From Macrostomum lignano (Eukaryota): 64,000 nt of DNA. Under the pieces are notes generated by a model that was given only the letters and a program-made list of their open reading frames with translations, had not been told where the DNA came from and searched no databases. The stretch lies in assembly GCA_002269645.1 (NCBI GenBank), contig NIVC01000994.1, positions 1 to 64,000 on the forward strand, in the 5' to 3' direction. This document shows, one piece after another, positions 7,445 through 12,451 of the stretch; within the stretch, counting starts at the first letter, position 1, and each line of letters begins with the position of its first letter. Position numbers and translations under genes: made by a program.

Positions 7445-7907
7445 ATGGTAGAGCCGGTAAAGCTAGCGAATTCAAGCAGCAATACGGCGCAGGGACTTTC
7501 GGCTCGTAGTCAGCCAAAAGCAAAACCACAGTTTTATTATTTAGTAATGAGCGAGAAATTTTCCTGGTTGGAATTTCACCAAGAGTTGAAGTGTGCCGGC
7601 CTCACCAAAAAGAGGGCCGCCTTTCAAACCCGGATTGGCGAGCTGGTGGAAGGCGTCGCAGCCGCCGTGGTTGGCATCAGCGGCGAGTCCTACTACGACT
7701 GGATGATGACGGGCAGCTTCGTGGAAGGCTGGGGCAATAATCTGTTCAGGCTGGACGGCGTCACCGGCGTAGACTCCGACATCGATTGGAGCCAAGTTGT
7801 CAAGCACAAGGTGTACCACCTGCGCAGCACCTGCCACTCTGTGGTTGACTGCATCAATAGGAAAGACTACGAGTTGAAAAATGGGCATATTGTTGTGAAG
7901 AACAGCA
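7445..7907 (+). CDS. cGAS-like receptor / Mab-21-family nucleotidyltransferase, exon 1
   Basis: TGSFVEG...DSDID is the GS...DxD motif of the pol-beta-superfamily NTase in its GSxxEG..SDxD invertebrate cGLR form. Perfect donor A|GTGAGT at 7907/7908 (phase 1). Start could be ATG 7445 or 7547. Confidence 0.82.
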
Positions 7908-8029
7908 GTGAGTGTTGCATTGGATTGCATTGTATATGAAATCAATAATTGTGTTTTGATTTGACCGGGCAAACGCTCTATGCTTCATTTGTATGCAGCT
8001 CACAGTGCTAGGGGACCTAGGGGTCACTG

Positions 8030-8297
8030 AAGGAACTGGAGATACTCACTGAAGGACCTTGGGGATGCTCACTGAAGGCCCTTGAGGATGCTCACTGAAG
8101 GACCTTGAGGATGCTCACTGAAGGACCTTGAGGATGCTCACTGAAGGACCTTTGGGATGCTCACTGAAGGACCTTGAGGATGCTCACTGAAGGACCTTTG
8201 GGATGCTCACTGAAGGACCTTGAGGATGCTTACTAAAGGACCTTGGGGATGCTCACTGAGGGACCTTGGGGATGCTCACTGAGGGACCTTGGGACCT
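8030..8297. repeat. ~23-bp array (GGATGCTCACTGAAGGACCTTGA), cGLR intron 1
   Basis: Direct reading. Confidence 0.9.
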
Positions 8298-8380
8298 ACG
8301 CTCTGAAGGACTCGATCCTTTGTGGTCCATAAAACAAGCGGAATTCCGATCTCGCAAAATGACCTCCCCTCGGCTGTCAG

Positions 8381-8729
8381 GTCAGCAGCCGGCATTCGAC
8401 ACGAAGCGTCACGGACTGCGCCCCGACACGGACGAGTGTCACGCCTATCCGTGCTGCTCCTACCCGGCCACTGTGCTGGACGATGATCAAGATGAAGTCA
8501 ACACTGACAGATATCCAGTGTGCGATAAATTTCAACAGATTATTAAGACGCAGTTTGACAACGAGAATCCGATCGAAGATGTGCACTTTGTTCGGGCCAG
8601 CGTGCCAGGCGAGGTGAACCAGCTGCGCCTAAGCTGCACTAGGCAGGAGCGCTTCATAATGAGTCAGCTAAGCACAGTTCAAGGACAGCTATTCACTGTG
8701 CTCAAATATCTTTTCAAAACTAAGGAGGA
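8381..8729 (+). CDS. cGAS-like receptor, exon 2
   Basis: Acceptor TGTCAG 8380 is phase-compatible. DTDECHAYPCCSYP supplies the third Asp in a D.v.A..C..(W)P-like motif, and LRLSCTRQERFI..QGQLFTVLKYLFK matches the Mab-21 RLSFS..E..L...Q...LK motif. Donor GA|GTAAGT at 8729/8730. Confidence 0.85.
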
Positions 8730-8769
8730 GTAAGTATTGATGTTTCGTTCGATACATTGCCTGCATTAG

Positions 8770-9262
8770 TGTCTGTCGTTCTGTCTGTCTGTCTGTCTGT
8801 CCGTCTGTCTGTCTGTCTGTCTGTCTGTCTGTCTGTCTGTCTGTCTGCCTGTCTGTCTGTCTGTCTGTCTGTCTGTCTGTCTGTCTGTCTGTCTGTCTGT
8901 CTGTCTGTCTGTCTGTCTGTCTGTCTGTCTTAGTGTCTGTCTGTCTGTCTGTCTGTCTGTCTGTCTTAGTGTCTGTCTGTCTGTCTGTCTGTCTGTCTGT
9001 CTTAGTGTCTGTCTGTCTGTCTGTCTGTCTGTCTGTCTGTCTGTCTTAGTGTCTGTCTGTCTGTCTGTCTGTCTGTCTGTCTTAGTGTCTGTCTGTCTGT
9101 CTGTCTGTCTGTCTGTCTTAGTGTCTGTCTGTCTGTCTGTCTGTCTGTCTGTCTGTCTGTCTGTCTGTCTGTCTGTCTGTCTGTCTGTCTGTCTGTCTGT
9201 CTGTCTGTCTGTCTGTCTGTCTGTCTGTCTGTCTGTCTGTCTTTCTGTCTGTCTGTCTGTCT
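8770..9262. repeat. (TGTC)n microsatellite with TTAG interruptions, cGLR intron 2
   Basis: Direct reading. Confidence 0.97.
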
Positions 9263-9302
9263 ATTAGATGAAAGCTTTAATGATGATCTGTTGCAATCGC
9301 AG

Positions 9303-12300
9303 CGAACGCAACCCTAAGTCGGAGAAGAAGATCATCGAGAGCGTGAAATCCTACCATGCAAAGACCTTGTTAATGAAGTTGCTGCGCGACCGGGACAGCT
9401 GGCCAGCAAACGGGCATGACGATGACGTAGAGGAAGATGAAGAGGCATCAAAGAGGCTGGAGCGACTGGTCTGGCGCGGGCTCGGCTTTCTGTTGCGATC
9501 GATCACAACTAACCTTCAAGCTGCGGAGGCTGGCGAGGAGCCAAGCGGTGGTGTCCCAATACAGACTAAGTCTGCTTCACTGCACTGCTCACCTGATCAC
9601 TGCTTACCTGAAAATCTCCTCAATTTCAGGCGATTCGAAGGAACCACCACAGTCTCCATCTCGGCAGGCTTCCGTCGCCTCCAGCAGCGCGTCCACGAAG
9701 AGCTCGAACTCGAAGGTTCCGCGAGTACTGGACCACGCACTGCTGAAGGACTGCGGTCTCTACTTGAAGCCAAAAAAGCCAAAAGAGGCAACTAAAAGCA
9801 GCAAGTCGTCTATTCTGTCTTTTATTTTTCGATCGCCGCAGGAGCAGCCGAAGAAGGCGATATCTGCGATAGAGGCTCACGCTAGCGCTCTTGAGGAGAT
9901 GAAGGAGGACCTGCTAGGTCTGATCGGCAAGCGGGGAGACATGGACGATGTGCTCGCTGAGACGCCTGGAATTCTGTGGGAGAGAGGTTCAAGCGCAGTC
10001 AGTGATTTGAACCGAGAGCTGAAGAAGCTGAACGAGCCGGAGCTGAAAATGGTTCTGGAAAAATTCGAAAAACTAACTCAGAGTGAGATTGAAAGCATGA
10101 GCCAGAGTAAGGACACAAGTCAGGGTCAGGGCGCTAGCCGTAGCCAGGGTGAGGACACAAGTCAGGGTCAGGGCGCTAGCCATAGCCAGAGTGAGGACCC
10201 AAGTCAGGGTCAGGGCGCTAGCCGTAGCCAGGGTGAGGACACAAGTCAGGGCCAGGGCGCTAGCCATAGCCAGAGTGAGGACCCAAGTCAGGGTCAGGGC
10301 GCTAGCCGTAGCCAGGGTGAGGACACAAGTCAGGGCCAGGGCGCTAGCCGTAGCCAGAGTGAGGACCCAAGTCAGGGCCAGGGCGCTAGCCGTAGCCAGA
10401 GTGAGGACCCAAGTCAGGGCCAGGGCGCTAGCCGTAGCCAGAGTGAGGACCCAAGTCAGGGCCAGGGCGCTAGCCGTAGCCAGAGCCTGACTCGGAGTGA
10501 AAGTGAAAATGACATGAGACAAAGAGAAGAGAAGCTGCGCAAGAAAATCGCGAATCTGTATGGAAAACTCGGCGATACCTACAAGCTATACGACGTTCTA
10601 AAAGACTATCAGACCCGAGTGACGAGTACTTCGGACGAAAGAAAAAAGCACGGCAAGAAAGAGGATGTCATCGGAGATGAGGCACAATTTCTTTTCATTC
10701 CGTTAGCAATGCTGCCGCGAATCACGTTAGACACTCTGCTTGACGAGAAGGGGCGTCGGTTGAAAAAGGAAAAAACTACCGGAGCTGCCGAAGGTTCAAC
10801 TGCCGTAGCTGGTGAACGTTCAACTACCGTAGCTGGTGAAGGTTCAACTACCGGAACTGCCGAAGGTTCAACTACCGGAGCTGCCGAAGGTTCAACTACC
10901 GGAGCTGCCGAAGGCTCAACTGCCGTAGCTGGTGAAGATTCAACTACCGTAGCTGGCGAAGGTTCAACTACCGGAGCTGCCGAAGGCTCAACTGTCGTAG
11001 CTGGCGAAGGTTCAACTACCGGAGCTGGCGAAGGTTCAACTACCGGAGCTGGCGAAGGTTCAACTACCGGAGCCGCCCAGGGTTCAACTACCGGAGCTGG
11101 CGAAGGTTCAACTACCGGAGCTGGCGAAGGTTCAACTGCCGTAGCTGGCGAAGGTTCAACTACCGGAGCTGGCGAAGGTTCAACTACCGTAGCTGGTGAA
11201 GGTTCAACTACCGGAACTGCCGAAGGTTCAACTACCGGAGCTGCCGAAGGTTCAACTACCGGAGCTGCCGAAGGCTCAACTGCCGTAGCTGGTGAAGATT
11301 CAACTACCGTAGCTGGCGAAGGTTCAACTACCGGAGCTGCCGAAGGCTCAACTGTCGTAGCTGGCGAAGGTTCAACTACCGGAGCTGGCGAAGGTTCAAC
11401 TACCGGAGCTGGCGAAGGTTCAACTACCGGAGCCGCCCAGGGTTCAACTACCGGAGCTGGCGAAGGTTCAACTACCGGAGCTGGCGAAGGTTCAACTGCC
11501 GTAGCTGGCGAAGGTTCAACTACCGGAGCTGGCGAAGGTTCAACTACCGGAGCCGCCCAGGGTTCAACTACCGGAGCTGGCGAAGGTTCAACTACCGGAG
11601 CTGGCGAAGGTTCAACTACCGGAGCTGCCGAAGGTTCAACTACCGGAGCTGCCGAAGGTTCAACGAACGAACCTTTCAAGGATTCGGCAGTCGACCAAAA
11701 AGCAATAAATGAGCTTAAAAAGGCTTACATTAAAGTCTGGATTGTACTGAGAAGCCTGAGCGATTCAGAGAGGAATTCATCTGAGCCTAGCCAGACCCAG
11801 GGCCCTAGCCGTAGCCAGGACGCTGGCCAAAGGCCGAGCGACAGCTCACTGCAGAAGGCCAAGCAATGGATCAAAAACAAGGCGTTTCTAAAGACCACTT
11901 GGCTGTGCCTGGAGATCATGGAGAATCTAAAGAATGGCCACATAGAGGAGGTGAAACGGCTCCTCAGGGAAACCGATTGTCAGCCAACACGATGGATCAA
12001 ACCAGAGAAGGATTACGACTTTGCCAAGCTGCTCAGAGAAAAGGACTGCGTATGGATATTTCACTACTTCATCAGGCCCAATATAAAGATCAGCTACAAC
12101 TACTTGAACGACGTGCAGAATCCGGTCGAAAGAGGCACCAAAATTGAAAAACGAACGGAATACGAGAAAGGCGAAGGCAGGGTGTTCGAGTACATTAACG
12201 GTGTGCGCAAGGACTGGCTGATTCACCTGGTTGTCAATCAGGACGACAAGAAAAGCCGGCAGCCGAGTCTCACTGTCAATTTCGACGGCCTGCTGGACCG

Positions 12301-12451
12301 ATTCAGGCGTCGATTCGGTGACGGCAACGTGGACGTCGATTCGGCAGCACAGATAAAGGACGACGACTATTTGGACACAATGAAAAACTGCCTGTTTGAC
12401 CCACGCGAGGCGGAGAGGCTGGAGGCCGAGAGGTTGAAAAATCATAGATAA
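9303..12451 (+). CDS. cGAS-like receptor, exon 3 (Mab-21 C-lobe plus long C-terminal extension); +1 frame break between ~9630 and 9795
   Basis: Acceptor TCGCAG 9302 restores phase (KTKED-ERNPK). KSYHAKTLL and HCLPENLL are Mab-21 C-lobe motifs. That frame stops at 9793-9795, while the overlapping frame stays open to TAG 12449-12451. Removing 1 nt makes the three exons total 3960 nt (1319 aa). Confidence 0.7.
10100..10487 (+). repeat. Coding VNTR, 42-bp / 14-aa unit [14 protein letters not shown]
   Basis: About 9 units in frame within the cGLR ORF. Confidence 0.92.
10775..11665 (+). repeat. Coding VNTR, 24-bp / 8-aa unit (A)GEGSTTG with a 360-bp higher-order duplication
   Basis: About 37 units. 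The 60-nt lines starting at 10861-11101 are identical to those starting at 11221-11461. Confidence 0.93.

Follow-up and report, generated by a model that had tools for sequence, protein, structure and literature searches.

A probable four-exon gene of Macrostomum lignano encoding a cGAS-like (Mab-21 fold) family member with a long, repeat-bearing C-terminal tail

Loss of cGAS-STING signalling is commonly attributed to flatworms. The cGAS-like receptors (cGLRs) of Macrostomum lignano have nevertheless been catalogued by Li et al. 2023, who noted ankyrin fusions among them (PMC9980059); M. lignano is not in the species table of that paper (PMC9980059). Entry into the curated set of Li et al. 2023 depended on an active-site motif, on homology across both lobes, and on similarity by AlphaFold (PMC9980059); five M. 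lignano proteins (PAA86972.1, PAA45980.1, PAA57558.1, PAA93208.1, and PAA68676.1) belong to that set and were cloned for a screen of 140 enzymes (PMC9980059, Table S3). The modules appended to cGLRs are thought to mediate protein-protein or ligand interactions (PMC9980059). Here, we analyzed a stretch of 64,000 nucleotides of M. lignano DNA (contig NIVC01000994.1 of assembly GCA_002269645.1, positions 1 to 64,000 of the forward strand; hereafter, the window), in which the region 7445-12451 (+) attracted attention. We consider it fairly probable that this region is a real four-exon gene encoding a 1292-amino acid (aa) member of the cGAS-like (Mab-21 fold) family. The gene is apparently a new and unannotated member of a published family. 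The initial annotation of this DNA had proposed an undescribed immune component, which is not supported, as the cGLRs of this species had already been catalogued and five of them cloned (PMC9980059).

The evidence for family membership comes from the M. lignano proteins themselves. The window protein could be aligned with the five cloned M. lignano cGLRs along both lobes, with 23-33% identity, and a search with a profile of this alignment yielded eight more proteins, all from M. lignano (E-values of 1e-82 to 1e-152). When a hidden Markov model (HMM) of the M. lignano paralogues, hereafter the family HMM, was compared with the spliced 1292-aa model, it scored 228 bits (E 4e-71), and residues 41-410 were aligned at 226.7 bits. 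Homology to the M. lignano cGLR set was thus found across the nucleotidyltransferase (NTase) core and the C-terminal helix bundle, as is expected of a cGLR. The cGAS-like assignment made in the initial annotation therefore stands for the N-terminal ~405 aa, which are placed in a Mab-21-fold family by this profile score and by the residues described below. The link to Mab-21 proteins in general is transitive, passing through the Pfam matches of the paralogues: Pfam PF20266 (Mab-21_C) matches all eight retrieved proteins (E 2.5e-6 to 8e-4, 19.9-28.0 bits), half of them (4/8) above the gathering score. Three of these eight paralogues also carry N-terminal ankyrin repeats.

A search of PDB sequences with the N-terminal domain of the window protein gave nothing at E<=10. 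The paralogue P0005 (one of the M. lignano paralogues P0003-P0006) was modeled with AlphaFold from a 12-row alignment, and its core reached a predicted local distance difference test (pLDDT) score of 60-89. In a Foldseek comparison of this model with the PDB, the top 50 matches were all cGAS, MAB21L1, or MB21D2, the best one with an E-value of 7e-7 and a probability of 1.0; the TM-scores per target were 0.43-0.57 over ~350-420 aligned columns. The fold is assigned at the level of the family because of the paralogue Pfam matches and this Foldseek result. The cGAS/Mab-21 fold thus holds for the family, and by alignment it would pass to the window protein.

The predicted catalytic residues are all present. 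G90 and S91 lie in MTGS (nt 7712-7717), D112 and D114 in DSDIDW (nt 7778-7786), and D172 is encoded at nt 8431-8433; all five residues align with positions that are invariant in the family. Altogether, 30 of the 36 columns invariant among the paralogues are kept in the window protein, including every one in the catalytic lobe. The cGLR motif of Li et al. 2023 is h[QT]GS-X8-20-[DE]h[DE]h-X50-90-h[DE]h. The window protein has M-T-G-S (aa 88-91), 20 residues, D-I-D-W (112-115), 55 residues, and T-D172-E, the first two elements and both spacings agreeing with the motif. The non-catalytic MAB21L1-type proteins are recognized by an incomplete acid triad; the gene was not filed among them because D112, D114, and D172 are all present.

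The gene model on which these comparisons rest is as follows, with all features on the forward strand.

7430-7444 (+): 5' leader, after a pyrimidine-rich AG acceptor (..tctctgcctcgctcag/TTGAAC..)
7445-7907 (+): coding part of exon 1, aa 1-154 plus 1 nt, with an N-terminal helix, MTGS, and DSDIDW; donor GTGAGT
7908-8380 (+): intron 1, 473 nt, phase 1, with a 23-bp x11.8 minisatellite inside at 8024-8293
8381-8729 (+): exon 2, aa 155-271, with D172 in RPDTDECHAYPCC, the strand VHFVRAS, and the spine helices LRLSCTRQERFIM and TVQGQLFTVLKYLFK; donor GTAAGT
8730-9302 (+): intron 2, 573 nt, phase 2, mostly a (TGTC)123 microsatellite at 8770-9262
9303-9547 (+): exon 3, aa 271-353, with C-lobe helices including SYHAKTLL
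9548-9629 (+): putative intron 3, 82 nt, GTGGTG..TTTCAG, phase 1, which would shift the exon-3 frame into the tail frame
9630-12451 (+): exon 4, aa 353-1292 plus the TAA stop, with the end of the C-lobe and the entire tail in one open frame
10100-10485 (+): in-frame 42-bp minisatellite, 9.2 copies, 94% matches, ~128 aa, the unit ending in [GS]ED[TP]
10774-11664 (+): in-frame 24-bp minisatellite, 37 copies, 89% matches, ~297 aa, unit GA[AG]EGSTT
11666-12448 (+): C-terminal 261-aa orphan region, codon-usage score +112.9

The first three exons are each matched by the family HMM: exon 1 at 7556-7906 (independent E-value, i-E, of 2.6e-28), exon 2 at 8377-8718 (i-E 1.2e-31), and exon 3 at 9340-9510 (i-E 6.5e-4), the last one also with a codon-usage score of +28.7 in its own frame. 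In tblastn searches with the paralogues, the window exons were matched with E-values as low as 1e-18, and exon 1 with 1e-17. The GS and DxD motifs of exon 1, the third Asp of exon 2, and the Mab-21 C-lobe motifs, all listed in the initial annotation, are present at 7445-12451. Within exon 2, RPDTDECHAYPCC is followed by LRLSCTRQERF and TVQGQLFTVLKYLFK, and exon 3 carries an acidic insertion that is not present in the paralogues.

The AG acceptor just before 7430 may be a spliced-leader trans-splice site, as trans-splicing is common in M. lignano (PMC5730564), or it may mark the start of an internal exon; the UniProt model discussed below begins exactly at 7430 (LNLNKMVEPV). The position of intron 1 is common to the window gene and the P0005 gene (..GSG/SQPA..). 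An alternative acceptor for exon 2 at 8338/8339 (exon start 8339) is phase-consistent, yet the paralogue alignment, the P0005 intron position, and the UniProt model all favor 8380/8381, which yields ..KNSSQQPAFD.. in agreement with the paralogues. For exon 3, the acceptor 9267/9268 (start 9268) was rejected; the exon was taken from 9303 (acceptor 9302/9303), as a start at 9268 meets an immediate in-phase stop. Intron 2, which consists almost entirely of (TGTC)123 and has a consensus GTAAGT donor, may represent an intron gain through insertion of a repeat. The P0005 gene (L001, 7749-9224) encodes aa 218-709 in a single exon, and the window gene splits the same region by introns 2 and 3.

A public model of this gene exists in UniProt. 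The M. lignano entry A0A1I8J3X3 was the sole database relative of a first spliced model; across the two longest collinear blocks its identity to the window is 99-100%, and across the two shorter ones, where the gene models differ, it is 85-91%. The entry bears the name 'Bromo domain-containing protein'. Of its Mab-21 core, 50 aa are missing, its frame is patched by small splices, and it ends just before the first minisatellite. Its name and its model both look like annotation artefacts. No genomic locus is on record for it.

The junction between the Mab-21 exons and the tail deserved particular attention. In the initial annotation, three phase-consistent exons ran into the tail and gave a spliced length of 1319 aa. 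This is not the case, as the exon-3 frame is closed by a TAA at 9793-9795, and the tail open reading frame (ORF), of 1004 codons and ending at 12451, lies in the +1 frame, where it is open from 9437. A fourth exon is therefore needed, and the corrected model encodes 1292 aa. The long ORF to 12451 itself, as well as the C-terminus of ~260 aa, is present as originally described.

The 82-nt intron was put to the test because the peptide obtained by reading through it resembles a paralogue motif. Under this alternative, the locus would make two products, namely a short Mab-21 protein ending near 9795 by read-through and a separate tail ORF, for example a cistron trans-spliced at AG 9628-9629 with its first Met near 9887. 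The exon-3 frame is indeed open to 9795, the read-through peptide superficially resembles SPDECMPHFF..LYF of the closest paralogues, and in M. lignano, polycistronic precursors that have several trans-splice sites make up ~7% of the transcripts (PMC5730564). A codon-usage log-odds score trained on the other coding segments of the window nevertheless favors the tail frame over 9630-9795 (+11.2 versus -2.9 for the read-through frame). Read in the tail frame, the four non-repeat segments of exon 4 score +11.2, +36.5, +35.9, and +112.9, with negative values for both remaining forward frames; the frame preference thus changes between 9547 and 9630. When the 64-kb window was scanned in six-frame translation with a profile of the family's CMxHFF..YxK block, the best match was at 9731-9796, in the tail frame and at the end of the C-lobe, and the read-through frame gave none. 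The full family HMM likewise runs through this block in the spliced model only, and the independent UniProt model has the identical junction (..AGEEPSG/DSKEPP..). Look-alikes of the SPDECMPHFF-like motif carry little weight, as they were found in three different places or frames, one of them in a third frame. A trans-splice site upstream of the stop of the first cistron would also be unusual. We therefore regard two separate products as very unlikely. Another alternative considered was that 9548-9629 is read through and that a frameshift of one base follows in the A6 run (9772-9777), reflecting either an assembly error or a pseudogene; codon usage and the block profile favor the spliced frame. 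We infer that the four-exon model with the 82-nt intron is the best one.

The tail starts at about residue 405 and would comprise ~887 aa, of which nearly half (~425 aa) is encoded by two in-frame minisatellites. A serine/lysine-rich linker and a helical stretch are followed by the 42-bp array, a segment of 99 aa, the 24-bp array, and the final 261 aa. The two low-complexity insertions of the initial annotation are thus present, and their nature is corrected here to DNA minisatellites (42 bp x9.2 and 24 bp x37). The 24-bp array contains a recent higher-order duplication of 360 nt (10774 versus 11134, 98% identical). The non-repeat tail has codon preferences like those of the other genes in the window; the tail is coding, and it shares its reading frame with the end of the C-lobe.

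One or both of the arrays could be spliced out, as a GT and an AG are found in every unit, and the mature protein would then have ~870-1160 aa and a much shorter linker. It is consistent with this that the two other long repeat arrays of the gene are intronic and that the 24-bp array has a codon-usage score of -121 in the ORF frame, although this value effectively counts one 8-codon unit 37 times. Against it, the periods of both ORF arrays (42 and 24 bp) are divisible by three and produce no stops in the ORF frame, whereas the period is 23 bp in the intron 1 array and 4 bp in that of intron 2; moreover, no consensus donor or acceptor is found in the flanks. Removal of the arrays by splicing is, in our estimation, quite unlikely, and we retain both of them in the 1292-aa model.

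C-terminal extensions are normal for this family, as the paralogues also carry 200-330 aa beyond the Mab-21 domain; in P0005, a single exon encodes this domain together with an extension of ~270 aa. Homology between the window tail and these extensions was looked for and had no statistical support (BLASTP/phmmer E >= 0.15, HMM E 0.06-0.08, hhalign probability 0.3%), and only short collinear motifs, one of them YVNFDALM, were found, none significant. The last 261 aa had no match at E<=0.001 among 1.84 billion representative proteins, no Pfam family above its cut-off, and no meaningful match among PDB sequences, and a single-sequence AlphaFold model of this region had a pLDDT of 38. Two hits to the C-terminus, Pfam DUF5820 (19 bits versus a cut-off of 33.7) and a PDB chain of a designed repeat protein (E 0.19), were dismissed as chance. 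This region has apparently never been annotated, since no protein containing it is found among the 1.84 billion representatives.

Several observations weigh against reading this locus as a four-exon gene of the cGLR family. On PF20266, the sole Pfam match of its N-terminal domain, the window protein (aa 258-301) scores 13.3 bits with E 0.094, below the cut-off of 24.1, and PF03281, the Mab-21 NTase domain, gives no match to it; taken alone, Pfam does not decide the matter. Six family-invariant residues are changed (G284S, W318E, C385V, M386L, F389A, and F390L), all in the C-lobe. The flanks of the third catalytic motif (T-D-E) are not hydrophobic, as h[DE]h would have them, a feature likewise found in the published members PAA93208.1 and PAA68676.1 (Q-D-T). 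Intron 3 has a weak donor (GTGGTG), and P0005 lacks introns 2 and 3. None of the five M. lignano proteins in Table S3 bears the active-cGLR label (PMC9980059), and both cGAS and STING were reported lost in Schistosoma mansoni, the flatworm examined earlier (PMC4117786); because of this reported loss, a downstream receptor in Macrostomum is hypothetical.

Some of these points would also fit a decaying or non-enzymatic copy, a paralogue of recent origin into which micro- and minisatellites have spread, in which the frame is open only by virtue of repeat periods divisible by three and which is unexpressed or non-catalytic. Such a copy could account for the loss of 6/36 invariant residues, all in the C-lobe, for the lowest Mab-21_C score of the family (20-28 bits in the paralogues), for the weak third donor and the two introns not shared with P0005, for the repeat arrays, of which the two long introns hold one each and the ORF two, and for a C-terminal region seen in none of the 1.84 billion representatives. 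Yet the frame of 1292 codons is intact, and the non-repeat part of the tail (~513 codons) has a strong codon-usage signal in exactly that frame. All invariant residues of the catalytic lobe are kept, and introns 1 and 2 have the consensus donors GTGAGT and GTAAGT. Decay is thus unlikely in our view, and a real four-exon gene is the reading that we favor.

If so, the protein would, like characterized cGLRs, be an enzyme that is activated by a ligand and synthesizes a nucleotide second messenger. Its tail would be a family-typical C-terminal extension stretched by two in-frame minisatellite expansions, the expansions themselves most likely acting as disordered spacers. The terminal 261 aa could be a fast-evolving, lineage-specific module, most plausibly involved in regulation or partner binding. 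A more ambitious proposal, to which we give little credence, is that cGLRs able to catalyze have been retained and multiplied in Macrostomum, in contrast to the parasitic flatworms surveyed so far, with the 261-aa orphan region serving as a new sensor or effector module that couples nucleotide signalling to a receptor other than canonical STING and the rapidly changing minisatellite linkers tuning this coupling.

The window as a whole is animal DNA rich in micro- and minisatellites, and the neighbors of the gene include an RRM protein, an ArfGAP, a GBBH/TauD dioxygenase, a SIX homeobox gene, and two retroelements. The following were recorded.

13641-15548 (-): PH + ArfGap gene (Pfam E 3.5e-32), convergent with the cGLR gene, its ORF extending 5' through a long array encoding PILTKDPNPHKRSQSSQKI, with several frames of the array open
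19865-20419 and 22183-22965 (-): two exons of a gamma-butyrobetaine/TauD-type dioxygenase, separated by an intron of ~1.7 kb full of tandem repeat (21509-22186)
25422-27428 (-): ORF of a non-LTR (long terminal repeat) retrotransposon, 668 aa, with reverse transcriptase and RNase H domains
31016-32539 (+): 507-aa ORF with the look, by eye, of a seven-transmembrane receptor and no Pfam match at E<=1e-5
45200-48883 (+): open ORF of 1227 aa of a Pao/BEL-type LTR retrotransposon (DUF1759, RVT_1, Peptidase_A17, DUF5641), an element that may be young
57085-57822 (+): exon of a SIX-class homeobox gene (SIX1_SD E 1e-44, plus homeodomain)

The density of tandem repeats is exceptional across the window, and many arrays create long spurious ORFs on both strands. 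They lie at 5.7-6.9, 8.0-8.3, 8.8-9.3, 14.3-16.3, 17.1-18.0, 21.5-22.2, 29.3-29.7, 35.3-35.9, 40.9-41.6, 54.7-56.3, 58.1-58.7, 60.0-61.2, and 62.9-63.9 kb.

Among flatworms, M. lignano is an exception in having a lineage-specific expansion of cGLRs, which has been biochemically silent so far. To this expansion the window paralogue adds a member that lacks ankyrin repeats and has an extreme tail, and no public protein set appears to contain its complete coding sequence. Its value is for the catalogue of the family and for the choice of constructs, and it leaves the published picture unchanged. As M. lignano is tractable to transgenesis, its cGLR family is a reasonable place to ask what such signalling targets when STING may be absent.

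Compared with vertebrate cGAS, human MB21D2, and MAB21L1 (e.g., PDB 4K9B, 6EDC, 7LT1, and 5EOM), the fold is common at the family level, as judged from the paralogue model and Foldseek, and the GS loop and the three acidic residues come in the same order; identity is only ~12%. The distance from GS to the first acid is 21 residues in the window protein versus 12 in cGAS, and that from the second to the third acid is 58 versus 92. Neither a zinc-thumb sequence nor a basic N-terminal DNA-binding region was noted in the window protein, and, unlike MAB21L1-type proteins, it has the catalytic acids. The arrangement of a core with appended modules recalls the invertebrate cGLRs with TPR, ankyrin, death-domain, or multi-cGLR fusions (Li et al. 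2023), but here the appended region consists of low-complexity repeats and orphan sequence with no recognizable domain. The closest relatives are the M. lignano cGLRs themselves (Table S3 entries 92, PAA93208.1, and 93, PAA68676.1, as well as P0003-P0006), from which the window gene differs in several respects. Unlike their ankyrin-bearing members, it has no N-terminal ankyrin repeats, and no ankyrin exon is found in the 7.4 kb upstream. Its C-lobe has the acidic insertion, with CMxHFF degenerated to VLDHALL, and it has two extra introns. Its tail is ~3x longer, contains two minisatellite arrays, and ends in a region that is not demonstrably homologous. With these same proteins it nonetheless shares 33-36% identity over both lobes, the motifs [MI]TGS[YF]xEGW, DSDIDW, GxRPxxDxCxAxxCC, VH[LF]VRA, ELRVSF/QLRLSC, TVQGQLFT, and YHAKTLL, the position of the first intron, and an extension C-terminal to the Mab-21 domain.

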